Shown here piece after piece: positions 14,049 through 45,270 of a DNA stretch of 64,000 nucleotides. The number at the start of each line of letters is the position of its first letter. Position 1 is the first letter of the stretch. Made by a program: the position numbers and the translations under genes. The DNA is from Botryllus schlosseri. Taxonomy: Eukaryota. Location of the stretch: the NCBI GenBank assembly GCA_051294905.1, contig CM119373.1, forward strand, positions 29,388,001-29,452,000, given 5' to 3'. The notes under the pieces are model-generated. The model saw only the letters and a list, made by a program, of their open reading frames with translations. It was not told the DNA's origin and made no database searches.

Positions 14049-14215
14049 GCCTACTACTAAAAAATACTAGTCCATCCTCAAGATTACCGGACCACGACTG
14101 ACCTATCGATCTCGCTTTCCATGCATGCCGCTCCATTTCTTGTCGCTTTATTTTTCTATACTATCTTCTTTACTTTTCATTCAGTGTGCATGCCTCCTCT
14201 TTACATTGCCTAGAC

Positions 14216-22996: not shown

Positions 22997-23144
22997 CGGA
23001 TGACCGTGCTTGATGTAGCCTGATCGAAGTTTGGTGTATTTTCCATTTTTTCAAGTGCCTTGCTTCATGTTATATATATTTTAGTTAATAGAGTACATTT
23101 AAAAAATTTTGTCAAAGCTAGTAGAACAGCACTTCAGGTCGACG

Positions 23145-24056
23145 ATGGAGAATCCATCAATGTTGCAACAGCCAACACCGCCTCAGACGCAAACGCAGAA
23201 CTTCGGACAAACCTCCACAATTATGATTCCAGCCGGAGTGCCAGTTGCGCAAGGACAAGTGAGCGCTCCCGGGACTATCAAAGATCCACACTCGAATAAG
23301 AAAGCGATACATGGATTTGGTATCGCAGAACTAGTAATGGGGGGATTGTCTTTTCTCCTTACCATAATCCCGCTGTCCATCACTGAACGTGAACATGAAT
23401 GGTATTGGCGTAATTCTCCATACAGCCGTTGGCGCATTTACACCGGATTCACGTATGCATCGCCAGGAATATGGGGAGGAATATTTGTGATAGTGACGGG
23501 AATTCTAGCAGTACGTCTCAAATCGAATCCATCAAGATCAATGTACGTTGCAAATATGATTTTGGCAATAATCACCGCTTGCGCCACGTTGTCCTCGTCA
23601 GTCGTATCAGGCCTAGCGGCAGGCTTGTCCGGTAATTATTCATCGCTATTGGTCGCTATACATGTGATTATAACGTTGCTTAATTTCGTATCAATGATCG
23701 TAACAATTATTCACGCATGTTTCTGCTGTCGAGGGGTTTGCTGCAATAACCGTTCAAGACCTGCCCAACGCGTGGTGTACGTACCGACCCAACCAAATAT
23801 GATATACCCGCAGCAGACGCAGTACGTGCAGGGTCCGAACGGTCAAGTCATGCCGGTATACTTACAGCAGTTTCCAGCGCAACAGCAGTTTCCAGCGCAA
23901 CAATATCCGCAAAGCAGTGCTTCTAATACGGTTGTAAATACTGGATATCAGCCAAATAATATGACCGCGCAAACAGCGCAGCCACCGACTTACGACAATG
24001 TAAATCAGCCCGCTGTTCAAATTGAAACAAAACCCACTGGAGCCTTGAACGGTTAA
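23145..24056 (+). CDS. MS4A/CD20-like four-transmembrane protein, intronless, paralogue 2 (303 aa from ATG 23145)
   Basis: Four TM segments, SPGIWGGIFVIVTG, HACFCCRGVCC, Q/P/Y-rich tail with a PPTY (PPxY) motif. Confidence 0.85.
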   Translation: MENPSMLQQPTPPQTQTQNFGQTSTIMIPAGVPVAQGQVSAPGTIKDPHSNKKAIHGFGIAELVMGGLSFLLTIIPLSITEREHEWYWRNSPYSRWRIYTGFTYASPGIWGGIFVIVTGILAVRLKSNPSRSMYVANMILAIITACATLSSSVVSGLAAGLSGNYSSLLVAIHVIITLLNFVSMIVTIIHACFCCRGVCCNNRSRPAQRVVYVPTQPNMIYPQQTQYVQGPNGQVMPVYLQQFPAQQQFPAQQYPQSSASNTVVNTGYQPNNMTAQTAQPPTYDNVNQPAVQIETKPTGALNG

Positions 24057-25006: not shown

Positions 25007-25933
25007 GTGTTGAGTTTGGTCGAATCGGGTGCACTACTAAACACACGAGATTGTGTACTATTTCTGAGAAATCACGGGTTGTTGGTGCGAAGGATGAAAT
25101 GCAAGAGATGTAGAAAAATAATGAAAGAGGAAAATACGTCGACAGGCGACGATGGGTTTAGGTGGCGATGCAACCCCTGCGACACTACGGCGACTATACG
25201 AAAACACTCGATATTCGCAGGAAGCAAGGTAGAACTTCCCAAATTATTAATATTATTCTACTTTTGGGCCCATGACGCGTTGCAAACCCAAATTGCACAT
25301 GAAGCTGAAATTAGTCAGCGTTCAACGGTCACCTGGTGCGGCCGATTGCGAAAGCTTTGTACGGCCGAATTTCACAGGAATAAGCGACATCTGGGAAATG
25401 AAGGCGGCTGTGTGGTCATTGATGAAACGCACTTAGCTAAGCGCCGGGCTGCCTCAGACAAAGGACCAGCCGTTAAAGCCATTTGGGGGTTCGGTGGCAT
25501 AGATAAAGCTACCGGAGAAATGTTCATTGAGATTACTTCCGACAGGACTGCTGAAGTATTTCGAAAACTCATAGTAGAAAATGTGGCAGAGGGGTCCACA
25601 ATTTTAACCGATGCCTACCCTTCCTACAGGGGCATAGAGAGCTGGGGGAAGGGTTATATACACGGTGTAGTGGACCACTCCCAGTGGTTTAAGGACCCTC
25701 GGACATCTTTTTGTACTAATGAAATCGAGGGGGCCTGGGGCCAGCTTAAATATCATTTACATAGGTCTCGTGGGTTAGCACGTCACCTTTTGGCCGATTA
25801 TGTAGGGGAGTTTTTGTGGAAACGTCAATATCAAAAGACTGACCGATTTTTGGCACTCCTGCGTACCATACACAATGACCCACGGTATAATTTTGACAAA
25901 TTTGATGGGTCTCCTGTATTACCACAATTGTGA
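25007..25933 (+). CDS. IS1595/ISXO2-like (Merlin-type) DDE transposase 1; no in-frame ATG at the homologous N-terminus
   Basis: Zn-ribbon CKRC...WRCNPC, VVIDETHL, ILTDAYPSY, H.(V/I)VDHS, TNEIEGAWGQLK, Y..EF.W; frame is open from 24950. Confidence 0.88.
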   Translation: MLSLVESGALLNTRDCVLFLRNHGLLVRRMKCKRCRKIMKEENTSTGDDGFRWRCNPCDTTATIRKHSIFAGSKVELPKLLILFYFWAHDALQTQIAHEAEISQRSTVTWCGRLRKLCTAEFHRNKRHLGNEGGCVVIDETHLAKRRAASDKGPAVKAIWGFGGIDKATGEMFIEITSDRTAEVFRKLIVENVAEGSTILTDAYPSYRGIESWGKGYIHGVVDHSQWFKDPRTSFCTNEIEGAWGQLKYHLHRSRGLARHLLADYVGEFLWKRQYQKTDRFLALLRTIHNDPRYNFDKFDGSPVLPQL

Positions 25934-26062
25934 ACCCCGCTATAAGATTCCAGGACGGAAATGACGACATCTGTTATTTTGTGTTTTTACAGACGGTAGT
26001 CTAGGGCTAGTGCGCACTTATATTTAATTTATGACGTGGGGAAAACCACCACTGCCCGTACC

Positions 26063-28579
26063 ATGGACCTCCTTCCTCATTTTCTGTCTATCCTTGTTGG
26101 TATCATTTGTACATCTGATTTGTTGCTGCATACGGCGGCGAAAGGCATGCACGGACTCGCAGATCCTGTAACAGGTAGAGCACGATCTTTCACTCAGGGG
26201 ATGCTGGGTGAACTACGAGGACCCCTGCCTGATGAATGGATCACTTTAAATGATACACAATGGGAGGACTATCACTTGATGAGCATCTTCAATAAAACGG
26301 CGGAGCGACATGTATATAGACGGCCTGAGTTGTTTTACAGTAAGTCATTTGGTTACGTAGTGGCTGAGCGATTTTCATTACAACAAATGGCGTTTCCACA
26401 TGGAAGATATTGGAAAAATGTACCAGAATTTGAACGCACCTGTCTCTGTCAGCGACGCCTGGGCCAAATCACGCCCAATATTTCCTATGATGTCCTTAAA
26501 CAAACGAACATGTTCATTCGTCCAATAGGGGATTATAGGATCAGTTGGTTCTGGAGTGGGGACCAATACATGTCGTTTCATGACCTTGGCAAGAATTACA
26601 CTATGTTTGCTCTGACCAAATTTAAACTGATTATGATGAGACTATTCGAAAATTATTCAGCTGTTGAAGCTTCATGCCGTCAAAAGCCAATGACAGACCG
26701 GGACAGAGCCAAAATGAATGAATTGAATAAGTATAATGCCAGTAGCAATAGTTTTACACAATGCTGGCATCTAGTACAAAAAAGAGCCTACCGGGGCGAC
26801 TATTGGCAACAATTGTACTCCTGGAGGGAAAAAGGGGTCATAATAGGAATCTGTACAAGGTGTGATTTTAGAGGAGTTATCTCTGCCCTGGAACCAAATA
26901 AGGCAGATATAATCATCCAAGAAATAGTAATGACTACAGTAAATAACTGGCAGTATGTGCGCAGTCCGTTGATACCATGCCGGGCCCAGGGGGGATGGAT
27001 TAATCAGGACTGGTTTGAGCACTTATGGCCCGGGGGTGCTGTAATAGCCCATTCGTGCAACTTCTGGCCAGAAATGAATACCACTCTATGGGGCGATCTA
27101 CCAACGACAAATTTCCCTCCAAGAGTTAAATGGATACAACCGTCTTTTTCAAATCTAGATTATGGTTATTATGCTAATCGTGGCAATCAGGGCATGAGGT
27201 GGAATAACCTTTTTGATGGTGTACCGACTAGGTTTAGGGCATCTACATCAACATGGGTGCCTTTTCCCAGGCCTATGTGGAAACACTTCCCCTCTCTTAC
27301 TGCATCGGATGAAGCATGTAAAAATAGAATATCACGAAACCAGGATTTGTGTCGCGACCCGGTGGGCGGAACCGTTTTGAAGGCAGCTTTTTGGGACCAT
27401 ATTCATTTTGATCCAGAGCAAAACCGACCACGCTTTCCAGGGGGTCCAATAGAAATTAAAGGTGAATTGGTACCAGAAAATACCGCAAAACGGGGTACGC
27501 GTAGAAGGCGTAAAAGATTCCTAACTGGACTTATATGCCTTGTATTTGGTGTAATATCCGCGATTGCCGTCGTTGCAACAGTTTCAGCCCAGTTACATGA
27601 AGAGACGGTAGATCTTAGCCGACAAATCAATAATAGAATGATACAGGCCACGCAGAGGTCCACTGCACTGGGGAAAAAGATTAACGAACTCTCTCTACTC
27701 CAAACGGCTCAGCAACAGAAACTGGATCAAACGATCGCCACTATGGAAATGAGGGCATCACTAACAAATAGACGACTTGTACTAATGGAAAAGTACATAG
27801 AAAGAAACCGACAAATGATAATACGACAAGCCACAGCATCTCTGACCTCTTTTCAAAACTATAAGGAAATGAGTGATGCTGAACTAGCCATCGACCGATT
27901 AGTTTTGGACGAATTGGCTAATTTGACTGGCAAGTTAATATTTGACTCCAGCAAGGTGTACCTCACGAAAATCCGACAAGGAACGTTACGGATAAAGGAA
28001 CATGCTCAGCAGTTAACCGCCTATAGGGACGATTACATCAATGAGACAAATGACATTGGTGTAGAACTACGTGCTAACCGAATAAGCCTAGATCAAGCCC
28101 AACAGAGCGTGGATTTAGGCTTACAAGTTTGGAGAGAAGATCTGAATAAGAGTGTGTACATGAATATTTCTGACTGGCGATATGAGAATATTACAGTGAA
28201 GCCTTTCGAATTTGTTGGAGGGGAAGAATTTATGAAGAACTTTGGCCAAACGGTAGAAGAAATGACACACGGTGCCGGAAGCTTGATAAAATCAATAGGA
28301 GATAGCACAGGAAACCTACTACAAGACGGACTTGGCGCGGTCGGTGGTATATTTAGTAAAGGATTGAGCGGCCTTTTTTCTGGGTTGGGGTCTGTGTTAA
28401 TGCCAGTGATATTGATATTGGGGGCTGGGATCATCTTGTTTTGTTGCTGTCGCTATGGCAGTCTCTGCTGTCCTAAGTTGAAGTCTAAGGTACAGCAGCG
28501 TAACACGAATACTCAGTTGACAATGTACATATCATCGGTACCGACCCCCGTTAGAACAGCCAAATCGACCAGAATGTAG
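26063..28579 (+). CDS. env: Envelope fusion glycoprotein (class I-like), 838 aa from ATG 26063
   Basis: Signal peptide; furin site RRRRKR (27500-27517) followed by hydrophobic FLTGLICLVFGVISAIAVVATVS; heptad-repeat region; Gly-rich membrane-proximal region; TM helix; Cys-rich tail; many NxS/T sites. Confidence 0.85.
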   Translation: MDLLPHFLSILVGIICTSDLLLHTAAKGMHGLADPVTGRARSFTQGMLGELRGPLPDEWITLNDTQWEDYHLMSIFNKTAERHVYRRPELFYSKSFGYVVAERFSLQQMAFPHGRYWKNVPEFERTCLCQRRLGQITPNISYDVLKQTNMFIRPIGDYRISWFWSGDQYMSFHDLGKNYTMFALTKFKLIMMRLFENYSAVEASCRQKPMTDRDRAKMNELNKYNASSNSFTQCWHLVQKRAYRGDYWQQLYSWREKGVIIGICTRCDFRGVISALEPNKADIIIQEIVMTTVNNWQYVRSPLIPCRAQGGWINQDWFEHLWPGGAVIAHSCNFWPEMNTTLWGDLPTTNFPPRVKWIQPSFSNLDYGYYANRGNQGMRWNNLFDGVPTRFRASTSTWVPFPRPMWKHFPSLTASDEACKNRISRNQDLCRDPVGGTVLKAAFWDHIHFDPEQNRPRFPGGPIEIKGELVPENTAKRGTRRRRKRFLTGLICLVFGVISAIAVVATVSAQLHEETVDLSRQINNRMIQATQRSTALGKKINELSLLQTAQQQKLDQTIATMEMRASLTNRRLVLMEKYIERNRQMIIRQATASLTSFQNYKEMSDAELAIDRLVLDELANLTGKLIFDSSKVYLTKIRQGTLRIKEHAQQLTAYRDDYINETNDIGVELRANRISLDQAQQSVDLGLQVWREDLNKSVYMNISDWRYENITVKPFEFVGGEEFMKNFGQTVEEMTHGAGSLIKSIGDSTGNLLQDGLGAVGGIFSKGLSGLFSGLGSVLMPVILILGAGIILFCCCRYGSLCCPKLKSKVQQRNTNTQLTMYISSVPTPVRTAKSTRM

Positions 28580-28666
28580 TGCACGCATATGTACTCAAAG
28601 GATTTTACTTTTATAAAATTTAATTTTTTCATAAGTCCACAGATATACTAACTAATTTATAATAAT

Positions 28667-31600
28667 ATGAATCGTTACTTAAAAATATGGATTGTGCTGG
28701 CAGTAGCCTTAACACTACACCGAGGATATCTGCAAACTCATGGCCAATTATTGCCCCTATCTGATATGAGTGTGGTTCCCAGGATAGCATTTAATCTTAC
28801 AGGATGGACGACGTTCCGGTATCAAGGTCTCAGATACATCCGCCTTAATCAACTATTCAAATTAAACGAGAGTTGGCCAATAGGTGAAACGGAAAATAAT
28901 TTTCCAATATACAAAGAGACGCCCGAATTTGGTCCAACACGAGCTAGCCAAGATCAATTGTACAAGTTATTTGCACCCTCGGGGTCTGACAAGAGGTATT
29001 GGAATAATGTTAGACAATACGAAAGAGAATGCGGGTGCAATCGGAAACTATCAAGAATATCTCCCGATATTACGTTGGCAGCCTTTACCAGAACCACAAC
29101 ATATCGTCGAAAGAATAACTTCGGTTCAGTACATACATGGAAGTATGTGGTAGGAAGAGGAGCACATGGCACTATGGCTGTGCCAGGTCCGATCCTTCGG
29201 ATGATTTCTCCTAATGCTACTCCACAAGTTTCTATACACCAGCTATTGACGGTGTACAAGTTATCAGTGATGAATATCTTGGCACAATATGCAACAGTGA
29301 CAGCAAGGTGCCAGCAGCGTTTGGGAGAAATCGCGGGATGGAGAGTCAATAAAGGCGACTTTAACGTATGCGTGCACGGAGAAGACAACCAGATGCAATG
29401 CATAGGATGCTCATTTTATACAGACGATCTGGCAGTAAATATACTGTCCAGAGACTTTGTGGTCATGGAAATAGATAATAGCATCAGAGGATTAGGGACG
29501 AGAATGCAAGAAACTTATTCCTACAGTCAATGGCCAGCGGGAGTCAGATTACCCAGATTACATCACGACATCGTGTGGTTGAAGGCTCGAAATGAAACAG
29601 GCCCCAGGGAGAGGCCAGCAAACTTTGATGGTCATACTTGGTTTAGATTGAGGATTTACGCTCTTCGCGAACATCTAAATAATGATACTCAACGGATAAT
29701 GGGGAAGAAAAATTTTCCGACTATGTTGCAAGGCAGCATAGAATGTGAACGCAAGAAAAATAAGAAGGTTTGTCGCAATTCAATAGGAAGTTTGAAGACG
29801 GCCTTGGCCTTTAAGGAAGTGTTATATGATCCATATACAAATCAATCTGTGTATGCAGATCATAGCCATGGTCGATTACAAATTGCATCCCCAAGAACTG
29901 TAGGTCAGGAATCTCCACTTGAAGCGTGGCCTAAGAATCTACCCAATTGTAAACAACCCGGTAGATTAGGCAACCTTATCCTGACTGCATCATTCAAAAG
30001 CAATGGGCAAAACACAAGGAATATTGACTATTACCTAGCTCGCCTGGGAATGTTTTACGTAGAAGTAACGAAAAGGCGTTTACGCCAGTTATCTTTGCCC
30101 ATATATAAAATGCGAAAAACCCTGGGGAGATTGGACAGGTCCATAACTGGTGAAGAGATGGAGTCTCTAAGTCAGACGCTACGGTCAGCGTTGACACCTC
30201 AGAAACTGAGTAGGATAAATGAGGAGTTACTGAGCTATATGTCAACGCGCAAGCTCATAGAGGCGCAGCTTTATGATATGCGGATATTCCGACCTAGCGT
30301 TGCCTACAAAGCTATAATATGTGCGGGAATATTGGTGTATACACCTTATGCCTATAAGGAGAATATCCAACCGAAAACAAACTCCGCAAGGCCATCAAGC
30401 ATTGCAAAAGCATTAACAACAAGGCCTAGTAGTAAGGAAGGGACCACTCGAAGTGTGACTCCTAGCAGCGAGTCTAGTACAGTGTATAATTTCACTTCCT
30501 TCGAAATGGATCCAGAACCAACAGTGAAAATGGTGGAAACCATGATAACTGCTGGGGCAAGTATAAAAAGAACGGATCAGTACGATATTAATCGTTATAA
30601 CTATGATAATATAGAAGGTTATGAGGGATTTAGCTATGACGAAAATGACAACTATACCAGTTTACAAGAACCTGAAAATTACTACTATGACTATTATGAC
30701 GTAGATGGTGAATATGATAGTTCACTAAGAAGGAAGCCCATATCCGTTAGCGACACTACGACATCCACAAATATCATTGAAACTACAAATGCGTTATCCA
30801 CGAGTGGTACTCCAACCGCAATTACAGGGAGTCAATACACAATTAAGTCAACAATGGTTACCGCAACTTCTACGCCACGCCCGTCTGCATACACTCCGAA
30901 AAGTACTGCGGCTACATTAACAACTACTACAATCACGCCATATACTAGAAGGTTTACATCAACCATTATTACTTCTGGGACGACTTCATCGACACCACTT
31001 CCAGCCATGTCGATGACTGAGTATTCCTCACGCGAAGATAACACTAGCCCAAGACCGACTGCATCTATTATTACATTCTTAACTACAGTAAAAACTGTGA
31101 GTGAACAAGAAAGACGCAGGACGAGGCCCACAACTATCCTCACAACTGTGGAGCCGTCTACGGCTATATCAACAGAGATGGACACTCAGAAAAGCATTGG
31201 TATTGCTACGACAGGAGTCACCTTTTCTGAAAGAGGGTTAACAACTCGTGTACCAATGGAGAGAAGTGTAAACGCAAAGTTACAATGGAATACCATGACC
31301 GATCAAATACCCACAAAAAATGGTGAAATGATAGGCTCCTTATCCGTGCCAATAAAGAAAACACCCCAGATTACGCAGACACCTGAGTCTTATATTCAAT
31401 TGAGTTACCACACAAATCAACTCATGGACACAAAACCTCAAAGAGTGCATTTCAAAATGCTGTTTGATACAACCCAAGTAGCAACGACAGTCGAAACGCA
31501 CCAATGTTTCGTCACCGGCCATTCCCGCTCTAATACAGAACCAGATAATTTAAACAAAGAACAAGATCTACAGGTAAGAACTAAATCAACAACAATGCTT

Positions 31601-32068
31601 TCATCAGGGGACTATCAGAGCCAACCCACATCAGTAAGTAAAAATGATGTAATCAGAGGTTGGAAGAGTACTTCCAACAGTGCACTTTCTTCAATAACAC
31701 CCTCTATCGAAGAAGAAGGAAAAACTACACTCAGTATACCGCATACCTTACCTACGGCCAAATATGACAGACTGGACCGAATTACATTTGACTTTTATGG
31801 ACGACTGCACAAACTACAAGAAATGGAACAAGAATATGCAGCAGGTAAAATTATTGTTGATATTAACAATAGAAAAGATTTAGAAGAATCACTTAACAAT
31901 TATGTCTTGATTTTTGCGGTTAGCGTAACAACAATGGTAGGATGTATGTATTTATGTTATGCGAAATGCGGGAGAGTTGCAGCTAAAACTTATCTTAGAG
32001 AAGTTATTCGGCGGAATAACCGAAAGATGTATATTAACGTAGTAACATTGCATGAAAAACTGAGGTAG
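28667..32068 (+). CDS. Second type I membrane glycoprotein: Env-SU-like N-terminal domain plus Ser/Thr mucin-like stalk
   Basis: Signal peptide; RYWNNVRQYERECGCNRKL matches Env RYWKNVPEFERTCLCQRRL; long T/S-rich region; TM YVLIFAVSVTTMVGCMYLCYA. Confidence 0.82.
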   Translation: MNRYLKIWIVLAVALTLHRGYLQTHGQLLPLSDMSVVPRIAFNLTGWTTFRYQGLRYIRLNQLFKLNESWPIGETENNFPIYKETPEFGPTRASQDQLYKLFAPSGSDKRYWNNVRQYERECGCNRKLSRISPDITLAAFTRTTTYRRKNNFGSVHTWKYVVGRGAHGTMAVPGPILRMISPNATPQVSIHQLLTVYKLSVMNILAQYATVTARCQQRLGEIAGWRVNKGDFNVCVHGEDNQMQCIGCSFYTDDLAVNILSRDFVVMEIDNSIRGLGTRMQETYSYSQWPAGVRLPRLHHDIVWLKARNETGPRERPANFDGHTWFRLRIYALREHLNNDTQRIMGKKNFPTMLQGSIECERKKNKKVCRNSIGSLKTALAFKEVLYDPYTNQSVYADHSHGRLQIASPRTVGQESPLEAWPKNLPNCKQPGRLGNLILTASFKSNGQNTRNIDYYLARLGMFYVEVTKRRLRQLSLPIYKMRKTLGRLDRSITGEEMESLSQTLRSALTPQKLSRINEELLSYMSTRKLIEAQLYDMRIFRPSVAYKAIICAGILVYTPYAYKENIQPKTNSARPSSIAKALTTRPSSKEGTTRSVTPSSESSTVYNFTSFEMDPEPTVKMVETMITAGASIKRTDQYDINRYNYDNIEGYEGFSYDENDNYTSLQEPENYYYDYYDVDGEYDSSLRRKPISVSDTTTSTNIIETTNALSTSGTPTAITGSQYTIKSTMVTATSTPRPSAYTPKSTAATLTTTTITPYTRRFTSTIITSGTTSSTPLPAMSMTEYSSREDNTSPRPTASIITFLTTVKTVSEQERRRTRPTTILTTVEPSTAISTEMDTQKSIGIATTGVTFSERGLTTRVPMERSVNAKLQWNTMTDQIPTKNGEMIGSLSVPIKKTPQITQTPESYIQLSYHTNQLMDTKPQRVHFKMLFDTTQVATTVETHQCFVTGHSRSNTEPDNLNKEQDLQVRTKSTTMLSSGDYQSQPTSVSKNDVIRGWKSTSNSALSSITPSIEEEGKTTLSIPHTLPTAKYDRLDRITFDFYGRLHKLQEMEQEYAAGKIIVDINNRKDLEESLNNYVLIFAVSVTTMVGCMYLCYAKCGRVAAKTYLREVIRRNNRKMYINVVTLHEKLR

Positions 32069-35000
32069 ATATTGTAAAATAATTACTGGATTATTGTAAA
32101 GGTAGAAGTAAGGGTTATTATGTGTTTTGTTGTGTTCGGTCCGTTTTCACGGTTTAGAGTCCGTGTGAAATTAACCATTAACCTGAATTTAATTCCGTTG
32201 AAATAACATAATTTAAAAATTATGTTGTATTTGCCTATGGAAGCCTAAAAGTGTGCGGGATTTAAGAATGTACGAGGCAAATTCGCGGTATTAACGATGC
32301 TTATGCAACGAATACGATTGCGAAACACATAATTGCGAAATTTTCAGATGTTATTGCTAAGCCAAATCAGGATTGAGTAATACATCGGTTTGTAGTTCTG
32401 CTTCCCCGTCTAATGAAGCATCGGTTTGTAGTAATATGGGAGCAGATGGCGTGATCTTTGTAAAATGCAACTATAAATGACTGTGGGAATGTAAGTGTTG
32501 CAATAACATATTGACGCACAGGAAAGTATTAACTTTAGCAAAAACGACAGAATCCGACCTAAATTGGTGGTTTGATCACGCTATTGCAACACTCTTGCTC
32601 AATAAGGCCATAAAAGATGGTGAGAAAGGAAACGTTGCAGTGAGAGATGGACTCATAGGAAATAATTAACTGCAGAAAAATTGTGAAATTTGACTGCAAT
32701 TGGTGGTTTAATCACTCCGTAGTACGAATGATAGCGACAAAAATTTGCTTGATGAATGTTCGGATGTGCGTCAGTACCTACTATCCGAAATTAATTTATC
32801 GCTCGTAAAGATGGGGGGGCGGATGCAGGCATGTCAATGATCTTCCGCTCCTAACTGAATATAACTCGAAGCGCAGGGACAGAAAATTCAGTTCACTCTA
32901 CACAGAGCTGAAAGGCATGAAGAACCTAGGAAGCTGGCAGGGTTTGAAAAAAAACGTTACCTAAGACTGATGACGAGTTGTTCAAACCTTATGAACAATC
33001 GCATTAGGACGTTATGTAAACGTTAGATAGAGTCGTTGCTATATGAGACAATGACTCTAACAATAAGTGTCAACGTGGTAATTGACCAAAGATATTATCG
33101 GCCGTCACAAGATTGGGATCATTGTTTTGTAATAGTTGCCCTCCTCAGTGCTGCACTACTTGCAAAGAATGCGGTACTACTATGATATAAGTTCTCTATA
33201 TTGCACCAGTCTAATGTGACCTCATAGACCAAAGGAGATTGAAGATTATCTGAGCTAAACATAAAACGTCAGTGCTGTCCAATCGGGTGTTTCTTTGCAA
33301 ACTAAAAAGTACCATACTTATAAACAAGTTCAATTGTGGGACGGGAGACATAGTTAACACCATAATGGGGTTCTGTCTCACTAATTGAATCGCCAATATT
33401 GTTACGCTGAATATTACCAGGAGCATTGAGTCAAAAGGACGAAATGATATTATCTTCCCTGTTTCCGCATTAAATCAAGTAGCTACACTTGCATGGGGCT
33501 ATAAACTGAGAAATGGACTAGCAGTTCTTATCCAGAATACGGATATCACGGACTTCTAATTTTGTAACTAACAAATAGGTATATAGCCATGCTCTCCTGC
33601 TACATTTTCAAGAAACATTGGCTACCTTAGGCAAAGCAATTGGATATACGAGAGATAATGATACATTTTAAACAAATCGATGTCTAGGAAAATTTTGACA
33701 GTACAAAAAAGAAACTGATGCTCACTTTCCTATAAAGGGGAGAGAGTAAATCAACGAGGCATTCATAGCTATGATATGAAACATAATTATAGTCACCTGC
33801 TTCACTGGCATCTATAATATACAAAAATAAATCCTAAATACTCAGTACTAATTCAATATCGACGCTAAAAACTTGTCTGTAAAAATTAAAATGAGTCTTC
33901 GGAAATGCGAAGCGGTCGTATTAAATGACGAATATTTCACACGGAGCATATTGCAATAAAGAATACAATCTTGAAATCTATCTTTATCATATGACCAATA
34001 ATACAAAAGACACTATATTGAGTTTTAAGTAGTGTGTATACGCATTTGAGCAATAGCTTCGAACAATAAAATTTTAAAAGAACAAGTCAATATCACGAGG
34101 TTTGAAAGCCTATATGGAATATGGTATGACTCTTGCTTCACCTGGCTTATTGCCAGAAGTCGACTATTTTTCGTAAAGCAAGCTGCATTAATTGTTGCAT
34201 TCATTCTGCGTTGCTGAAGTACAAATGCTTGTGTTTTACGGTTAGAATAATTGATATTGTATCAGATAGCATAATATACTGATATAAGCAAAGAAATATA
34301 CCGCGAAATAAAATCGCGGCCCGCCCAACATGCATTCGCTCATAATGTTGCCTGTGATAAGAAGAGGTGCTGCTTATACCTGCTAAATACGACTACAAAT
34401 ATAATCATTTGCTGCACATAATGATAGTAGGTCTATAATTTTATGGTTTATGGTATAAGGTTGCTGTCAACGCTTTTTGCTACTATAGCTGTTATTTACA
34501 TATAAATTAAGAATGGCATCCCCATCGTATGACTTGGGCAACGGATTACAATGTCCTTTGAGAATTGCTTGCAATGGCATAATATGACGCATTTCGGCGT
34601 ATTGATTGACATGGCCATATTGGGGGATTCAAGTAGTTGAATGGCAAATTACTGAGTTGACAAACTGGTCTCATAAATTGATGGGACAGGTTCTATGTTC
34701 AATAAAATAAAAATTCAAAATAACTAAAATTTGATCGCAAAATCTATTCGCGGCCGAACAAGACGCCTTTAATAAAAATCGGCATCTATTTGGTGTCGGC
34801 CCCAAAGACAGCAGGACACTACGAACGAAGATCTAACCTAAATATAACAGTATTAGGTAGTATAAATAATTGCGGCAAAAGTTGTAATTTCAATCGGCGG
34901 AAACATGAGCAACAACCTATTGTGTATCAAGGCTGCCGCACGTAGTGTACTGCATATTGCACAAAACTGACAATAGCAACTAGGCTACAAGGAATGCCAA

Positions 35001-36797
35001 TAATTTCATATTGTATGTCGCTATACATAGGTCTAGGGTCTATCAAGTCACTGGTCTCAAGCGACTTGATTTGACCTGAATTGACTCGGTATATCAGATT
35101 TTTAACTCAGAGCAAAATTGGTGAGCTAATTTCAAGTTATCAAATAATCAATGTAAAACTGCAGTGACTCGAAATGACTCATGACTTGAATATTACAGTA
35201 TTGGAATCAAGACAACCAATCGGTATTTTAAATCAAAAAGTTTTTTTTATTTTCAAATATGGAAAGTGTTTCGGCCCTGGCCGGCTGCGTCGCTCCAATT
35301 GTTGCATTCACTACATTATGGTTTTTTTTTTTTACGACAAGCAGGGAATACCGCTTCAGGAAATGTAATCTATCGCATAAATGACTAGATTAAAACAATG
35401 TCTTCCAACTGTAGGTATTTTGTAGCATCTAACTAGACCAGTGAGTTAGTTTTACGACTAAAATAAATAACTTGCGATATTTCGGCTAAGCGGAATACAA
35501 TATTATATGTGAGACAACACTGTACAAATACCTACCTCGGTGATAGCGGACCGTAGGCTTAGGGTAATCCAGTCTGGTACATCCATATATATATATCCCG
35601 TTGAAAAGGTACGTTCCTTGCAACTTCTGGTATATCACAGGAATTATGGTTATCCCGGTTGAGAAACACTAACTTACAAACTCCAAAAATTAGCTATGCC
35701 TATACGCACAACTCGCCTCGTTGATCCAAAACCTAAAAATTGTGGCTAAGTAATTCGACAACGAGTGTCTGCCACAACGAAGACGAGTAGCATAGATAGT
35801 TTCCTGCACTGTCAAACTCATATTACGCTGCGAACCGGAAAATAGTTGAATAATAACAATTCTGCTCAAGACGCAAAGTGATTGATCCGCGTCGATGTTT
35901 TTAAGCTACTATGACTCTCGACTGTAAAATAGGTGCCGTTCTCAAAGCTCCCTTGGGTAAAGCATGGCTAATTTTAAGGAGGATATGGGCATGGTACCTA
36001 AATTTGTGTGACAAGAGCCACCCCAATTAAGGGGTCCTTCTAGAATGCCTGACAGGATGGAACGCTATTTGGGGTGATTCTAGTCATGCGCATTCGTATA
36101 TATATAAATAATAAAGGAAGTTCAAGTTATAGTGCGTCCCCATTAGCACAATGACCTGTATACTGAACATTGCCTTGTTTTTTTTTTAGTAAATAAGAAT
36201 CGTGCAAACGCTGGTTGTGTGCGCTCGGCGACTTGATATGGGAGTTTAAAAGATCGCAATGAAATGATGAGATTGATTTTGATTTAATATTGTGGTTTCT
36301 GTTTTAAAATAATCTATCCGCATACGCTCGACAATACTATTCAGTACTAGCAGAGGTGATTTCGACGCTGCACTCACCTAGCTGTGAGAGGGATACGCCT
36401 ATAATCTGGCTGCGAAATGCCGCGTACAACGAAGTAATTTTGTATAAATAAATAAGTGTATCAGAAGTAGACCACTTGCGTTTTGCTCTAGTTTGGTGAG
36501 ATTGGACGACTCGATAATTATGACATCAGATTTGCACTACACCACGCGCAAGTCCATCTTGGCATGTATGCTGTAAGAAGTATCAAGAATCTCACATCGT
36601 AGGTCGCGGTGCACTATTCTATTGTCATTAATTTACCATACTGATGAAGAAGTATCAAATTCTAATGCATGGGCGAAACTAAATTAAGAAATAGATAGTC
36701 TAAAAGAGATGTCAATTTCGATAAGAAAGCTATTGTAATCCGGGCCGACTGCGTTACTTTATTACTGCATTGCGTTTTACTAATGTAGGGTAAGAAG

Positions 36798-37328
36798 CAG
36801 TGTTGGGATGACTCGAGTCACTCGGGAAAAAAGTATTGACTCGTGTCTCGAGGCAAAATTTGCGAGTCAATATCAGGTCAATAAAATAAAAAGTGTCAAA
36901 TAAATTGCTGAAGCCTGCGCATACTCGAATTGTTTTGACAGATTATAAATAAATTAACCACAAATGAAACGATCGCGGCTTACGCTGTCGGGGTAGTTAT
37001 AAAGGATTATTCTAAATAACAACATCTTTCTGTCTCATTAGACAGCTCAATTCTTACGTTGTACAGTGCGTATCCTTCTGTATTTTGGTCAATAATGTCT
37101 GACTGTGGCATTTAGCTTTACAATTGTTCGCGTATTTGACTTGTGTGTGACCGATACAATAACTTTTTGCATGTATAGCTAACTACATATTTGTTGTTTA
37201 ATATAGATGCCAAAATTCAATTTGACTCGAATTGTGGTTTGACTCGTAATTTGACCTTGCTTGACTCGATTCTGGGTCTACCATGACTCGAGAAGACTAG
37301 TGACTCGAAGGAATTGATCCCAACACTA
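36798..37328. mobile_element. hAT-type MITE (GACTCG-rich) inside the ORF-free interval
   Basis: TIR CAGTGTTGGGAT / ATCCCAACACTA; TSD GTAAGAAG / GTACGAAG (7/8); motif content resembles 12085-12666. Confidence 0.85.
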
Positions 37329-40252
37329 GTACGAAGTATTTTTTCAAGAAAATCTGCGCTAACACGGCACGTCCTTCAAAATTAATTATATTTTTGAAAA
37401 CCAAACAGAACCGTTGACTTATCACCGACGAGTAGAGGAACAGGTGAAATATCTCAATCAAAAGGTATACAGTATCACACTAAAATAACATAATACCATG
37501 TTGCCTACGATCTAACTTATACCGAACCATAAACCTACATTTGCGAAAGCTGGTTTTCAGCTTATTGTATTACGGATTTGGTACATCCCTGTAAATACCG
37601 TTCGAAGGTTACACTATGTTGCAAGTTTTGACACATCTCATATTGCGCAGTAACCCTGTTTGAAGAACTCTGGTCTATAATTCTAAAACTAAATTGTGCT
37701 TTTGCGGACAACTCAGGTTGTCTTAGCTAAAACCTGATGCAATAATACGACGTCAAGCATGCAGTGAAGCAATGCCTAGTCGCATATAATGACTTCCTGA
37801 AATGGACTAACTCCCATTGCAGGGCGAGGCGAATATTATTGATTACTGACAATTGTGTGTTTTATAACACATAAGGGCTATGAAATTGTAAATCTACTGT
37901 AAGCCATGACAAACCTCGGCTTTGATAGACCGTACTGTTTTCAAACCTTTTTTGCGTACTGGATCACTAAACAGGGAAAAATGTGCTTGCTCGGGCTCTA
38001 TTAGGGACGTCCATTTCAAAACTGGTGCGTTATAGACTTCTACAATATCAACTCAAGTGTGTTCTAATTGTCAGGACATGATTGTAATTCACCAGAAATT
38101 GTTGTGTGGGTATGGTAATTTGTGTAATGATAGCTGCCTCCGTCAGCTGGTCTCTCCAAAATATTTGAAATAATGGAACAAGTGCTTGGGGCAGTTATAA
38201 GATTTTTTACGCTAGTCACCTTGTGATTAAATTAATCTAGGAGCACTAAAACTGAAATAGATGAAAATGATATTTACTCATATTACGCCTCAAATGTCAT
38301 GTAGTTACAAGTAAGTGAAATTAAGAGCAAGGTATCGGGTTTGTGCCAGTAATAGTGGTGGTCAGACTAGCTAGGTAGTCTTAAAAACAAAAGTAAAGTT
38401 GGCTAAATTTAAAAATACTCAAGTAAGTAGGTAGATTACAAAACATTGCTAAGTGAAACTTGGGTAGTGATAGATGTTTGTTTTCGATAATAGCCATTGG
38501 CATGTATGTAGCACAGGTATCTTATTCAAAAGTAACTATTGTTACGTGTCTGCATCTACAAAAGTAAGTTTTGCGTATTAGAGACGGCGCATAAATCGTA
38601 GATAATTCGGCAGCTAACAACGTTGGTTTACCAGTACTGGATAAGTTTACGCAGATATTGTTATAAAAAGAAACAAATGATACGATACTGAAGGAAGGGT
38701 TAGTTGACTTCTGAGGGTGAAAAGAACTACTTTTTGAATTTGTAGTTTGCAGAAGAAGTTACTCGGAACAGATTAGTTGCGAGAACATTGTTATATAGTT
38801 CGTTCAAAGTGTATTGACGTTGGTGACATAGCTATAGTAAAAAAGCCTAAAAAACGCGTACAGTTTTATAGCAAAACACAATAGTGTAGTAGTTAGCAGC
38901 GCAGGTGAGTTATTGAGCCTTCTGAATAAGGCCAAGAATGGCCGGCAGTTGCCTTGCCGATTGGAGCGGCTACGTGATGCCTTGAAATTATATAAGAAAT
39001 TCGATCCTTAAAATTTTTTTTGCCGAAAGTAGTAGGAAAATGGCAATTGATATATAAGTCACGTCATATTGGGATTGCATTTGGTGATGAGCTAAGCGAA
39101 TTGGTGATTAATTTTGCGATTCAAAATAAGTAAAAGCATGAGATTTGATTCGCAGGTTATGGGCGCCACCAAGCGGCTGGGTTAAACCAAGCAAGAATGT
39201 ATGTAATCAAAATGGCGAAAAATCGTACTTGTAAAAGGACGCATTACATACTACCACTTAATTGATGTCGCTTTTAGCTTTAATATCAAGTTTCGTAATT
39301 GAATGAGCGCTTAAGTTAATGTATGAGTTAAATTAAACCAATAAAAGTGAGAGAGACTAGGATACAAACCGTAGCCGTTTGTACAGTGCTCAGGTTGGCA
39401 ATGGACCAATAACAAGAATTATTGATGTATGAATGGCGTAGTTTATTGGTTACAGCCAAATACTCAGAAGGATACAGTAACTAATTAGCTAGGTAGTAAG
39501 AATGCATCTAATTAGAATTTCTCAATGGGCGTGCCACATAGAAGGTCATGAACCAAAAATTAGGTCCGATTTTTGGGATCCTTCGCGTTAAGATGGATCA
39601 AACGTGTCCATCCGAATCTGACTGTGATTCATGAGGATAAGGAAGTACACAGTGTTTAGAATGCGAGTTGGTAGACTGGTATTTGAAGGAGGTATGAGTG
39701 CACTATATTGATAACGGAGAAAGATGAATTGAGCAATGGAGGTATAAATCTCGAAAAATAGGTGTGTTAGGAAGGCGATGTTCCGTCACAAGATCCGGTA
39801 TATAATGGCCAATGGTCGCTCAAGTTCAGGTACAATTGCTGGACAATAAAAGAACTTGTACTAGATGAAGAAACAGGACATAAAATTGGTACAATCACCT
39901 ACAATTTTAATTCACCTGATTATAATTGATAGAAAGTTTTCGCTTTGAGCGCGGCCTCATATAAAATACGGATAATGTAGCAGTAAAAATGAACATCGAG
40001 ATTGATTTAGGATAAGGGATACCATGGCTATATCCTAGTGTGGCATATGTTAAAAAAAAAAAGGGGATGAATCGAAATAAGACGAATAGCATAATCACTG
40101 CGTACTGTGGTGCGAGCTCGCTAAGAAAAATGAAAGCTTCCAGTGGCATTCTTGGAAAATTTATGACACATAGACCTATTACATTTCCACAGACTTGGTA
40201 TAAATAGGGTCAAGAAACAGCAATACATCTCTTTGCTGGTATAACTGTAGCC

Positions 40253-40768
40253 ATGACAAGTGCTGATGCCATGGAGGCCTCTGTTCTGGATGAACAAATC
40301 TGGACCGGAAGGTGGATTGTTGTATTAAAAAATATAGATGAATTTCTCAAATCATGCCAAACATCGCCTGAAGCGGATGAAAATAAGGAAAATGAACAAG
40401 AAATTGACGAGGCCACCTTGGAAAGCTATTTTGAAAGAAACCCTTCGATTTGGGGAGATAGTACCGATTCGGAATTAGATCTAACCGACTCGGATGGAAG
40501 TTTGAGTATCTCGTCACATACTGATTCTGGACATGATGATATAGAGTCCTATTTTTACTCAGATAATGAGTCCGGGTCTTATTCTGATTCCGAGTCTAGT
40601 GATTTGACAGACTCGGACGAAAGTTTGAATACTCTACCCGATACTGACTCTGGGGTTAATAGTAGCGATTCCGATCTATCCTCAGATCATGAACAGTTAC
40701 GATCTCTTGACGAGGCAACTCTCAGGCGCCTTGATAGAATGTTTTGGCGCCCCTGGATGAACGAGTAA
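40253..40768 (+). CDS. Acidic Asp/Glu/Ser-rich protein with a near-terminal WRPW motif
   Basis: 171 aa, repeated DLTDSD/DTDSG units, ends RMFWRPWMNE. Confidence 0.65.
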   Translation: MTSADAMEASVLDEQIWTGRWIVVLKNIDEFLKSCQTSPEADENKENEQEIDEATLESYFERNPSIWGDSTDSELDLTDSDGSLSISSHTDSGHDDIESYFYSDNESGSYSDSESSDLTDSDESLNTLPDTDSGVNSSDSDLSSDHEQLRSLDEATLRRLDRMFWRPWMNE

Positions 40769-41567
40769 AATCGGAAAATTATGCGACCAAATGTACAAAT
40801 CCATAGGGACCATAATTTGTGGTGTGTGTATATTGACGATTTTGCATTATTACCAAAGATGTCGCGTTCTCTTATTATTTTGCAATGTTATTATGAAACA
40901 AGTTATACTGCGTGTATCTGGTTGTTGAAAGAGTTGAGCACCAAAATAACAACGTTAGTATATTCGACAGCTTTATGAAGTATAAGATAGATCGTTGGCT
41001 TGCATAAGATAGGAGATTAGTCATAGAGGCCTCAGACTCAAATGTGCACGCGGGACATTTCCTAGTTTAGGCAACACTGCGCGCCGTAGCACCAATAATC
41101 TGAGTATTTGATATGTGGGTTCTAGCTTGGTAGTACTTGATAGTTATTTACAGGCAGGCGCTCAACAAACAACGTTAAGTTGTAATTCACTATTACATTA
41201 TTCACGTTTAATTAAGATCATAACATTTTCGAAAAATTAGAATAAAAAAAAAAAAAAATTTTTTTTTTGGACCAAAGCATATCTTCTTTTAGTTAAAAGG
41301 TTATAAATTGTGGTGCCTGTGACACATTAGTTCTATCCTCAGGACTCTAATTGATTCTAACATCTGGTCCCGCTCAGCTGGTGTCGTTATTTTATGATCA
41401 TCTAATTAGTCTTAGAATAAGTAAGTTGATGTTGTAGCACCAAATTAATTTATAATTTTTAAGTCACGAATGATGGTAACAATATTAGACAATATCTTTG
41501 ACTAAAAGGAAATATTATTCTCTTTAGGTGTAAAAATAACAAGGACATAAATAAAATAAATAAAAGA

Positions 41568-42086
41568 ATGTCTGCCTCAATAACTAAAGAACAATTGTGG
41601 GAGTTATCTATTGAAAATATCGAACTATGGTACGAAGAACTTCGGGGGGTGAAAAAGACAGAGAGATTACAACGATGGAATGATTTTTTCGAGGACATTA
41701 AGAATGGAACTAGACATTATGCGGAGGCTTTCTTCGAAGGAATGGGAGCGAGTAATGAAAAGGTTAAAGAATGGCCGTGGCGAAATGACTATCGTAGAAA
41801 GCACTTAAAAAATCGAAGGGTAGCAAACATAAAACCATATTCACAAAGGAAATCGGCCTCAAACAAACAGAATAGAAATGAAGACATAGCGGCTAGCTCC
41901 TCAACATCGACAAGTAGTCCTCTTTTGACACCCATACTGACGTCGTCTTCAACAAGCCACGACTTGCCGCATACTGGCAATGTTATGACAGATGAGACGT
42001 ATGCATCTTTTGGCAGTATCATGTTTCGTCAACAACTGCCTATCGCTAGGTTTCAGCCTACAACATCACGTCATGCTGATGTTTAA
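41568..42086 (+). CDS. Hypothetical viral accessory protein (172 aa)
   Basis: ATG-started ORF on the element strand, preceded by a TCTTTAG acceptor-like site; no recognisable domain. Confidence 0.55.
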   Translation: MSASITKEQLWELSIENIELWYEELRGVKKTERLQRWNDFFEDIKNGTRHYAEAFFEGMGASNEKVKEWPWRNDYRRKHLKNRRVANIKPYSQRKSASNKQNRNEDIAASSSTSTSSPLLTPILTSSSTSHDLPHTGNVMTDETYASFGSIMFRQQLPIARFQPTTSRHADV

Positions 42087-42269
42087 TTCATTTCTCGCAT
42101 GTTATTTGACTAACATGATTGGTAGGGTTGTATTAATGAAGTTGAGCTAATGTATTTTATCTGCCTCGCATTGATGTACAATATGAACCAATATACTAAT
42201 GTTGCGTGAATAAAAAGGAAAACATTTTGTATTCTAGAAATATAAATAGTGAACTAATTAAAGAAGACA

Positions 42270-45175: not shown

Positions 45176-45270
45176 ATAATGACAACGAATGTAAATAAGA
45201 TTTTGACTTACAAAGGACACTTTTTCGAAGGTATAGAGGAACAGAGTGGGTTATCTAATTTAGGAGTAAA

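Follow-up and report, generated by a model that had tools for sequence, protein, structure and literature searches.

Two neighbouring, intact genes, inferred to belong to a retrovirus-like element, are true duplicates that have diverged in their layout. They lie in a 64,000-nucleotide stretch of Botryllus schlosseri DNA (GCA_051294905.1, contig CM119373.1, positions 29,388,001 to 29,452,000 of the forward strand), hereafter called the window. The first, Env1, looks like a cleavable membrane-fusion protein, whereas the second, Env2, keeps only the outer, receptor-type half on a long mucin-like stalk. Such a division of labour could not be found described for reverse-transcribing elements. An initial annotation, made from the sequence alone, had described a duplicated envelope gene split into a fusion protein and a mucin-stalk attachment-like protein, and the analysis presented here confirms that observation. 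Its interpretation, namely a two-component entry apparatus, or a glycan shield or decoy, arising by env duplication, is only partly supported. Duplication, the division of features and its conservation in relatives are borne out, but a known fusogen fold for Env1, a standard retroviral context and the proposed roles of Env2 are not. Table 1 lists the features of the region.

Table 1. Features of the env pair and of the surrounding element, with positions in the window
Positions	Strand	Feature	Residues	Observations
10661-11464		Paralogue of the CD20/MS4A-like ORF		Pfam CD20 E 2.2e-9; 53% identity to the ORF at 23109-24056
23109-24056	+	CD20/MS4A-like ORF upstream of DDE1		Pfam CD20 E 0.004
25007-25933	+	IS1595/ISXO2-like DDE transposase ORF (DDE1), directly upstream of Env1		Pfam PF12762 E 3.4e-10; NCBIfam IS1595 E 1.2e-17, below cut-off
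26063-28579	+	Env1, intact type I glycoprotein with class-I-like fusion-protein architecture	838 aa	First ATG of ORF 26036-28579
26270-27442	+	Env1 surface-subunit region paralogous to the Env2 head	70-460	AlphaFold2 pLDDT 80-95 for aa ~40-300 and 410-470
27500-27517	+	Polybasic furin-type cleavage motif, RRRRKR	480-485	Motif scan
27518-27598	+	Hydrophobic segment directly after the cleavage motif, putative fusion peptide	486-512	Kyte-Doolittle peak 2.69, mean 2.0
27692-28144	+	Predicted helical core of the C-terminal subunit, long helices with a small beta unit between them	544-694	AlphaFold2 H544-602, H605-620, E625-650, H652-694; heptad-type a/d hydrophobicity over 477-588 and 624-654
28361-28471	+	Env1 membrane anchor with Cys cluster	767-803	Hydrophobicity 2.8; Cys at 794-796, 802 and 803
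28667-32068	+	Env2, intact type I glycoprotein, surface-subunit-only paralogue on a mucin-like stalk	1133 aa	Orthologue P0030
28856-29860	+	Env2 head, homologous to the Env1 surface subunit	64-398	
29861-30361	+	Env2 segment conserved with P0030, heptad-rich	399-565	Heptad windows 455-502 and 511-558; no significant match in Env1
30362-31786	+	Env2 Ser/Thr/Pro-rich mucin-like region, including an acidic Tyr-rich patch at about aa 640-690	566-1040	Ser+Thr 22-48% and Pro 4-10% per 50 aa; no DNA tandem repeats
31898-31963	+	Env2 membrane anchor, followed by a 34-aa tail	1078-1099	Hydrophobicity 1.95
40253-54214	+	Dense block of same-strand intronless ORFs between the env pair and gag		LRR protein, IAP (3 BIR + RING), E2 ubiquitin-conjugating enzyme, two PWP3A-C-like ORFs, a second IS1595-like DDE, a four-member small family
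55810-58659	+	gag-like ORF with zinc knuckle	949 aa	Pfam zf-CCHC E 5e-4
58653-62072	+	pol ORF: protease-like N-terminus, RT, RNase H, C-terminal Tpt1/KptA-like domain; no integrase	1139 aa	Pfam RVT_1, RT_RNaseH and PTS_2-RNA

Homology and asymmetry of Env1 and Env2

Both ORFs are where the initial annotation had placed them, 87 nt apart on the same strand, with no stop or frameshift in 838 and 1133 codons, while the other frames carry 42-57 stops per 2 kb. Their N-terminal halves are homologous. BLASTP gives E 2e-10 for a first block and E 0.034 for a second, collinear block. Significance of the pairwise alignment had been named at the outset as a point on which the observation could fail, and it is far beyond chance: Smith-Waterman alignment of Env1 35-470 with Env2 30-400 scores 123 against a shuffled mean of 36.5 (z 18.2), and none of 300 shuffles reaches this score. 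Profile-profile comparison (hhalign) of an Env1-type alignment against an Env2-type alignment gives a probability of 99.8% and E 9.4e-29, pairing Env1 70-460 with Env2 64-398. The core cysteines are shared as well, since the columns of Env1 C127, C129, C205, C264, C267, C419 and C430 carry Cys in both Env2-type proteins, and hhalign also pairs C234 with Env2 C235.

The asymmetry between the two proteins is equally real. Only Env1 harbors the polybasic cleavage site, the hydrophobic segment that follows it and the long predicted helices. An R-x-K/R-R motif is present in 21 of the 23 Env1-type family members that span the site and is dibasic in the other two, whereas it is absent from both Env2-type proteins. 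Env2 carries instead a helical segment, about 475 Ser/Thr-rich residues (Ser+Thr is enriched from about aa 551 to 1050) and its own single anchor; this stretch has the composition of a mucin-like domain, although glycosylation itself, O-glycosylation included, was not measured here. No part of Env2 beyond aa ~400 is significantly similar to the C-terminal subunit of Env1 (z 2.0, 0.2 and 0.4, the first of these for the segment at aa 399-565).

Whether Env1 models as a viral fusogen had also been named in advance as a criterion, and it does not model as a known one. With a 43-sequence alignment, the AlphaFold2 model reaches pLDDT 64, with 80-95 in the N-terminal domain and only moderate confidence in the C-terminal subunit. 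Foldseek finds nothing at E below 0.1, the best values being 0.38 in PDB and 0.13 in BFVD, with TM-scores below 0.25. Sequence searches of Pfam, NCBIfam and PDB are empty, and profile hits to the long helix of HA2 have E 0.13-1. Env1 does display the sequence features of class I viral fusion glycoproteins, that is a signal peptide, an internal priming site, a hydrophobic segment at the new N-terminus and a C-terminal anchor. As for a trimeric coiled coil or helical hairpin, long helices and heptad patterns are predicted, but only a monomer was modelled, and these observations do not settle the matter in either direction. The designation "class I-like fusogen" therefore rests on sequence architecture and genomic position, and not on fold.

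Conservation of the pair and the surrounding element

Env1 belongs to a small family, with 41 proteins found in 1.8 billion representatives. The arrangement of the two genes is conserved in relatives. On a Logan contig, the Env1-type protein P0003 (769 aa; a relative at 31% identity) is followed after 97 nt by a 722-aa gene. P0030, which matches Env2 7-563 at E 1e-24, is 722 aa long and occurs on a single 5305-bp Logan contig, the same length as that of P0003. Two more Env1-type genes are followed after 82 and 89 nt by long ORFs cut by the contig ends. Env2 and P0030 cluster together with 94% bootstrap, apart from all Env1-type heads. The duplication is thus old and maintained, and Env2 is not a dying duplicate. 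The Env2-type heads have diverged faster (distance 0.81 for Env2 versus P0030, against 0.63 for their partners Env1 versus P0003), which fits an exposed binding protein.

Further related loci (designated L001 to L007) link the Env1 family to a particular pol lineage. Env1-family genes lie just downstream of protease-RT-RNase H-Tpt1 pol genes in L002, L003, L005 and L006. The pol and gag of the window are 38% and 28-29% identical to those of L003 and L005, relatives carry 38-46% identical pols with the same layout, and the gag-like ORF is homologous to the ORF upstream of pol in L003, L005 and L007. A DDE ORF sits directly upstream of Env1-type genes in L001 and in a Logan contig, and upstream with one ORF between in L004, a decayed relative that carries DDE, PWP3A-like, Env1-type and pol sequence in that order on one strand. 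In the window, however, the env pair lies 24 kb upstream of gag-pol, not downstream, and no element ends were found, so that its membership in the same unit as that gag-pol is inferred from relatives. L003 and L005, which are more distant, manage with one env, and Env2 is therefore not essential to the lineage.

The element is not a standard retrovirus. Its RT and RNase H are of the Ty3/gypsy-retrovirus kind, as indicated by Pfam, by PDB hits to caulimovirus-type, Ty3 and foamy virus enzymes, and by about 25% identity to many gypsy pols. By contrast, no rve/integrase family appears in pol or in any other ORF scanned, and a Tpt1/KptA-like domain, also matched in PDB, occupies the C-terminus of pol, as it does in L003, L005, L006 and L007. 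No LTR pair was seen: the window contains no direct repeat of 60 nt or more apart from one 74-nt tandem, there is none around the single copy in L006, and L003 is flanked by inverted rather than direct repeats. Since the window may not contain the ends of the element, these observations leave the presence of LTRs undecided. Relatives lie in tandem arrays, and the window carries a large block of captured-looking genes.

Comparison with other envelope systems

Among the closest known systems are the envelope-carrying Ty3/gypsy elements of metazoans, or errantiviruses, with F-type or herpesvirus gB-type Env (Chary and Hayashi, eLife 2026, PMC13524379). They too are gag-pol-env reverse-transcribing elements of invertebrate-type genomes, with a Ty3/gypsy kind of RT/RNase H and an Env carrying a conserved furin site, a hydrophobic fusion peptide and a C-terminal anchor. 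However, they have integrase, LTRs and a single env of F or gB fold. The Env1 model matches neither F nor gB in PDB, neither Fusion_gly nor Baculo_F appears in Pfam searches for Env1 or any of the 43 aligned sequences, and the cleavage site, at aa 485 of 838, lies after a ~460-aa surface subunit rather than a short F2-like piece.

The nearest precedent for a fusogen with a divergent paralogue next door is provided by the G and G_NS genes of ephemeroviruses (Rhabdoviridae), in which the entry glycoprotein gene is duplicated in tandem (Walker et al. 2015, PMC4334499). These are negative-strand RNA viruses with an unrelated fusion fold, and G_NS is a full-length copy, whereas Env2 keeps only the surface half and adds a mucin stalk. 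Paramyxoviruses and pneumoviruses offer a layout similar to that proposed here, with a cleaved class I fusogen beside a separate attachment protein, which is mucin-like in the case of pneumovirus G. This likeness is an analogy of layout and not homology: F and G are not paralogues and G is a type II protein, whereas Env2, with an N-terminal signal-like segment and a C-terminal anchor, is type I and homologous to the surface subunit of Env1, which also keeps a full surface subunit of its own. No sequence or fold match to F was found.

Filovirus GP and retroviral Env proteins share the furin-cleaved surface plus transmembrane subunit design, with a heavily O-glycosylated Ser/Thr-rich region carried by an entry glycoprotein, but there a single gene does everything. 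Env1 does not fit the gamma-type retroviral Env (TLV_coat): a CxxC is present in its surface part (aa 264-267, also in Env2), but its C-terminal ectodomain has no CX6CC or immunosuppressive-domain-type motif, has no cysteine apart from one in the hydrophobic segment, and gives no Pfam hit to retroviral Env families. Nor is there a Foamy_virus_ENV match for Env1; one distant family member (P0036) has a 60-residue sub-threshold hit (23.8 bits against a cut-off of 27) in the membrane-spanning end only. Finally, Caulimoviridae and other pararetroviruses also have protease-RT-RNase H without integrase (PMC11363490 for caulimoviruses), and the best solved-structure match of the window's pol is an "Enzymatic polyprotein" RT (8r0s). 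Endogenous plant pararetroviruses often lie in tandem arrays, like L005. The present element differs by its animal-type gene content, envelope module, Tpt1-like domain, IS1595-like DDE genes and much larger size, and episomal replication was not demonstrated.

Possible roles of the two glycoproteins

The explanation considered best, with moderate confidence, is that Env1 and Env2 are tandem paralogues forming the envelope module of a retrovirus-like element from an apparently undescribed, integrase-less lineage related to Ty3/gypsy-type elements. In this view, Env1 is the fusion glycoprotein, in which a conserved furin-type site frees a hydrophobic N-terminus on a helix-rich, membrane-anchored subunit from a ~460-aa cysteine-bonded surface subunit. 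Env2 would descend from a copy of the same gene that kept the surface-subunit fold with its core cysteines, but lost the cleavage site and the whole fusion subunit. The homology, the asymmetry of features, the conservation of the gene pair and the linkage of the Env1 family to this pol lineage are demonstrated by the analysis. That Env1 mediates fusion, and that Env2 is a non-fusogenic, heavily O-glycosylated, receptor-engaging partner held far from the membrane, are inferences, and no data on expression, virion incorporation or receptor binding were obtained. Env2 would most likely serve attachment beside Env1, so that binding and fusion are split between two proteins.

A possible, though less favoured, alternative is that Env2 is not an entry protein but an element-encoded masking or shielding factor. 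Its head would bind the element's own receptor in or on the producing cell, resulting in superinfection exclusion or easier release, or its stalk would sterically shield surface molecules or act as a decoy. Env2 indeed keeps the fold and cysteines of the receptor-type half but none of the fusion machinery, and the mucin-like length differs greatly between orthologues (about 475 versus about 100 residues in P0030), which fits a spacer or shield rather than a precise machine. Fusion-dead env derivatives that block receptors are well known for vertebrate endogenous retroviruses, and mucin domains of filovirus GP shield surface proteins. Those receptor blockers are host-co-opted copies, however, whereas here the gene stays linked to Env1 within the element in several lineages. 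The data do not separate this reading from the attachment reading, and the attachment, shield and decoy roles are all untested inferences.

It is unlikely that the two genes are instead glycoproteins of an integrated large DNA virus-like element or of the host, with gag-pol as an unrelated insertion. The 24 kb of other genes separating the pair from gag-pol, the difference in G+C (46-48% for gag/pol, 34-43% for the accessory block), and the dense one-strand packing and multigene families, which resemble large DNA viruses, would be consistent with this. Against it, Env1-family genes follow homologous pol genes directly in four independent loci, gene linkage recurs in L004, and the head-to-tail arrays of relatives would place an env module upstream of the next unit's gag, as seen here. 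Least likely of all is that Env2 is a functionless duplicate whose long ORF is only young: although the Env2-type heads are the longest branches in the tree and a word-indexed search found no homologue beyond P0030, Env2 is an open 1133-codon frame in 41% G+C DNA, and an orthologue at only 26% identity is still open, keeps the signal peptide, shared cysteines, helical segment, a Ser/Thr stretch and the anchor, and holds the same position after its Env1 partner.

A more far-reaching and only tentative reading is that the pair is the entry module of a previously undescribed lineage of large (over 40 kb here), enveloped, integrase-less reverse-transcribing virus-like elements of animals, whose pol carries an RNA 2'-phosphotransferase-like domain and which carry IS1595-type DDE genes and captured host genes (IAP, E2, LRR, CD20-like). 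Within this lineage, a two-glycoprotein entry system would have evolved by env duplication and loss of the fusion half in one copy, converging on the fusion-plus-attachment design of negative-strand RNA viruses.

Reverse-transcribing elements are textbook one-env systems, in which binding and fusion sit in one precursor. The conserved, intact pair described here, with one copy that kept the whole machine and another that kept only the binding-type half on a mucin stalk, shows a route by which a two-protein entry apparatus, or an element-encoded receptor-masking protein, can arise from a single fusogen. The Env1 family matches neither of the two env types recently catalogued for metazoan gypsy-like elements (F-type and gB-type), and so adds a third, structurally unassigned envelope type. 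The surrounding element is unusual in its own right, with no integrase found, a Tpt1-like pol domain, tandem arrays in relatives and a large captured-gene block, and it bears on how far retroelement genomes can grow and how they integrate.

The Env1 and Env2 genes and their similarity

Env1 and Env2 are two intact ORFs on the + strand, separated by 87 nt. Env1 encodes 838 aa, counted from the first ATG of ORF 26036-28579, and Env2 encodes 1133 aa. Between 26 and 32 kb their frame contains 0-2 stops per 2 kb, whereas the other two frames contain 42-57. The positions of both genes, of their main features and of the neighbouring elements are listed in the table. Env1 carries ten cysteines in its first 430 residues, and its membrane anchor, which harbors a Cys cluster, is followed by a short tail. 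By contrast, Env2 has a cysteine-containing head and no R-x-K/R-R motif anywhere in its sequence, and no tandem DNA repeat underlies its Ser/Thr-rich region. An acidic, tyrosine-rich patch lies inside this mucin-like region, with a composition reminiscent of the tyrosine-sulfation sites of mucin-type adhesion receptors.

The initial annotation had described the two adjacent glycoproteins as sharing collinear blocks, with cleavage and fusion features in Env1 only, and this observation holds. The significance of the alignment had been set out in advance as a point on which the reading could fail, and it proved to be far from chance. BLASTP gave an E value of 2e-10 for the first of these blocks and of 0.034 for a second collinear block. 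A local alignment of Env1 35-470 with Env2 30-400 scored 123, against 36.5 +/- 4.8 for 300 shuffles (z 18.2), so that chance similarity is rejected. Profile-profile comparison of six Env1-type sequences with the two Env2-type sequences gave a probability of 99.8% and an E value of 9.4e-29 over Env1 70-460 and Env2 64-398, which corresponds to the whole part of Env1 in front of the cleavage site. The cysteine columns conserved across the family (Env1 C127, C129, C205, C267, C419, and C430) carry Cys in both Env2-type proteins. However, Env2 beyond aa 400 shows no significant similarity to the C-terminal subunit of Env1 (z 2.0, 0.2, and 0.4). The idea that Env2 is the remnant of a whole env with a degraded fusion half was rejected on this basis.

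Positions of features in the window and in the loci of relatives (L003, L005, L006, and L007)
Sequence	Position	Strand	Feature
Window	4326-5183	-	Harbinger/PIF-type DDE_Tnp_4 transposase ORF
Window	6267-6414		Perfect 74-nt tandem duplication
Window	8208-9887 / 13084-14727		Decayed inverted repeats (79-95% complementary)
Window	10661-11464		CD20/MS4A-like paralogue, inside the inverted repeats
Window	23109-24056	+	CD20/MS4A-like ORF (53% identical to the other paralogue)
Window	25007-25933	+	IS1595/ISXO2-like DDE transposase ORF, intact
Window	26063-28579	+	Env1
Env1	N-terminus		Hydrophobic segment
Env1	aa 480-485		RRRRKR
Env1	aa 486-512		Strongly hydrophobic segment, directly after RRRRKR
Env1	aa 767-803		Hydrophobic anchor
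Window	28667-32068	+	Env2
Env2	N-terminus		Signal-like segment
Env2	about aa 551 to 1050		Ser+Thr at 22-48% per 50-residue window
Env2	aa ~640-690 (window about 30585-30735)		Acidic, tyrosine-rich patch
Env2	aa 1078-1099		Single anchor
Window	32069-40252		8-kb A+T-rich stretch (37% G+C) with almost no ORFs on either strand
Window	40253-54214	+	Dense block of intronless ORFs
Window	45271-46311	+	LRR protein
Window	46999-47946	+	Second IS1595/ISXO2-like DDE transposase ORF, intact (38% identical to the first)
Window	49146-50840	+	IAP with three BIR domains and a RING
Window	50967, 51452, 53129, 53729	+	Four-member family of 131-161-aa proteins
Window	52537-52992	+	E2 ubiquitin-conjugating enzyme
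Window	55485-55501		TGG-started 17-mer, about 320 nt upstream of gag
Window		+	gag
Window	58653-62072	+	pol
Window	about 61578-62039	+	Tpt1/KptA-like domain of pol
L003	6573-9308		Pol ending in a Tpt1/KptA-like domain
L005	10001-13243		Pol ending in a Tpt1/KptA-like domain
L007	1497-4508		Pol ending in a Tpt1/KptA-like domain
L005	366-23243		Head-to-tail array
L003	1-3963 and 17910-21868		Inverted repeats (~4 kb, 99% identical)
L005	6062-7075 and 13264-14043		CUB-domain ORF between pol and env
L006	13041-13745		CUB-domain ORF between pol and env

Relatives of the pair and the predicted fold of Env1

A word-indexed protein search found one Env1 relative and no Env2 relative, whereas an exhaustive search of 1.84 billion representatives found 41 homologues, nine of them at E below 1e-30. 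All of them come from Logan or ENA assemblies. IMG/VR and two JGI metagenome scans found no relatives, and exact look-ups of ten window proteins found none in the collection. Among the 23 Env1-type proteins that span the cleavage site, 21 have R-x-K/R-R and two have a dibasic motif. One protein of 722 aa, P0030, is an Env2 orthologue, which matches Env2 7-563 at E 1e-24 and Env1 93-458 at E 1e-18. It shares the signal segment, the cysteines, and the helical segment, and it has a short Ser/Thr stretch (34% over about 50-100 residues) and a C-terminal anchor. P0030 occurs on a single 5305-bp Logan contig, the same size as the one on which the Env1-type protein P0003 is followed after 97 nt by a 722-aa gene. 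Two further Env1-type genes (P0001 and P0002) are followed after 82 and 89 nt by long ORFs cut by the contig end.

In a neighbour-joining tree of the head domain, with distances computed after removal of gap-rich alignment columns, Env2 and P0030 group together (94% bootstrap), as do Env1, P0002, and P0003 (100%). The Env2-type pair is more divergent (distance 0.81) than their partners Env1 and P0003 (0.63), although the tree does not resolve the point of attachment of the Env2 branch. The duplication therefore predates the split of these elements, both copies have been kept, and the Env2 head evolves faster.

The nature of Env1 is indicated by its position. Env1-family genes lie directly downstream of pol in four loci of relatives (L002, L003, L005, and L006), and those pols are 38-46% identical to the pol of the window and share its layout, with a protease-like N-terminus, RT, RNase H, and a C-terminal Tpt1/KptA-like domain. 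The gag-like ORFs are homologous too. Env1 is therefore the env gene of this retroelement lineage.

Its fold, however, is unassigned. Whether Env1 would model as a viral fusogen was the other condition named at the outset, and no match to a known fusogen was obtained. A single-sequence AlphaFold2 model was useless (pLDDT 37), whereas a 43-row alignment gave a usable model with a pLDDT of 64 overall, 80-95 for aa ~40-300 and 410-470, and 60-90 for parts of 560-690. This model shows helices at 544-602, 605-620, and 652-694, with a small beta unit between them. Foldseek searches with it found nothing below E 0.1 in PDB or BFVD, and the weak coronavirus HE/spike and influenza HEF rows, with probabilities of 0.08 or less and TM-scores below 0.2, were not used. 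A family profile gave only weak hits to the long helix of influenza HA2 (E 0.13-1). Pfam, PHROGs, NCBIfam, and PDB sequence or profile searches of Env1, Env2, and their alignments gave no family, and none of the 41 family members gave a meaningful Pfam hit. The sub-threshold Lipase_GDSL (P0014) and torovirus-spike (P0003) hits fall in the helical region and are treated as composition effects. Calling Env1 a class-I-like fusogen thus rests on its conserved cleavage site, the hydrophobic segment that follows, the helices, the anchor, and its genomic position. It is neither the F-type nor the gB-type env catalogued for metazoan gypsy-like elements (PMC13524379).

The surrounding element

The element is not a canonical retrovirus. 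No integrase family was found in pol or in the other ORFs scanned, and pol ends in a Tpt1/KptA-like RNA 2'-phosphotransferase domain where an integrase would be expected. An R-H...R...R set of residues is invariant across five copies of this domain. Five further loci recovered with a Tpt1 pattern (L008-L012) are only 23-26% identical; they were judged to be cellular Tpt1 genes and were not examined further. Literature searches for Tpt1-bearing or integrase-less animal retroelements and for duplicated env genes found no description, within the library searched, of such a gene pair or of a Tpt1-bearing pol, which is absence of evidence only.

No LTR-size direct repeat was found in the window, where the 74-nt tandem duplication is the only direct repeat of 60 nt or more, and no LTR pair was seen around any copy, including the single copy in L006. 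L005 shows head-to-tail arrays of 99% identical units (shifts of 7.2 and 13.8 kb), and L003 is flanked by inverted repeats. The boundaries of the element in the window were sought without success: the 62-64 kb tail resembles nothing upstream, and the ORF-poor stretch between Env2 and the accessory block resembles nothing else in the window or in the loci fetched. The TGG-started 17-mer upstream of gag is in the place where a tRNA primer-binding site would lie, but it has no exact match in the relatives' loci, and the matching tRNA was not identified. Rfam and tRNA scans of the window found nothing, and a bacterial promoter/terminator scan and a count of TATA and poly(A) signals per gene were uninformative.

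On the + strand of the window, the order is a CD20-like ORF, an IS1595-like DDE, Env1, Env2, the ORF-poor 8 kb, the dense block of intronless ORFs, gag, and pol. Besides the LRR protein, the IAP, the E2 enzyme, the second DDE, and the four-member small family, this block holds two PWP3A-C-like ORFs, and these genes other than the DDE look like captured host genes. A DDE ORF upstream of env recurs in two loci of relatives (L001 and L004) and in a Logan contig. L004 also has a PWP3A-like ORF between the two and carries pol sequence further downstream on the same strand; the tblastn matches on relatives' loci include decayed copies. This DDE family is a candidate substitute for the missing integrase, a role that was not tested. 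The Harbinger/PIF-type ORF in the left part of the window is probably an unrelated transposon. By analogy with the arrays in L005, the env pair probably belongs to a unit whose tail runs into the gag of the next unit, or to one very large unit, but since the ends were not found, this is an inference. All four core genes (gag, pol, Env1, and Env2) are unbroken in the window.

Interpretation of the gene pair

What the analysis demonstrates is a conserved gene pair, in which one member has every sequence hallmark of a primed fusion protein and still keeps its own surface subunit, whereas the other has the same head fold but neither a priming site nor a fusion subunit, and is held on a helical segment and a long mucin-like stalk with its own anchor. 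That Env1 fuses membranes, and that Env2 is a non-fusogenic, heavily glycosylated, receptor-engaging protein, is inferred from this anatomy. The initial annotation had proposed that a two-component entry apparatus, or a glycan shield or decoy, arose by env duplication, an interpretation that is partly supported, since the duplication is well founded and the roles are not demonstrated. An attachment partner for Env1 is favoured, and the whole picture is considered somewhat more likely than not, with the attachment role as its weakest part. A receptor-masking or shielding role fits the same anatomy and, although regarded as less likely, is not excluded by these data. A non-retroelement origin and, least likely, a decaying duplicate are both disfavoured by the conserved orthologue and by the pol-env linkage in four loci.

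Among known systems, the closest precedent for a tandem duplicate of an entry glycoprotein with a divergent second copy is G/G_NS of ephemeroviruses (PMC4334499). The closest functional layout is that of F plus a mucin-like G in pneumoviruses, but those two proteins are not paralogues. The closest elements are the env-carrying gypsy-like elements of metazoans, from which this one differs in env fold, in lacking integrase, and in having two env genes.

More distant relatives (L003, L005, and L006) have a single env. Some of them have a 280-360-aa N-terminal extension, or a separate secreted CUB-domain ORF between pol and env, with a signal peptide in the L005 copy that was examined (6062-7075). 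This ORF is another way in which this lineage adds an extracellular binding module next to its env.
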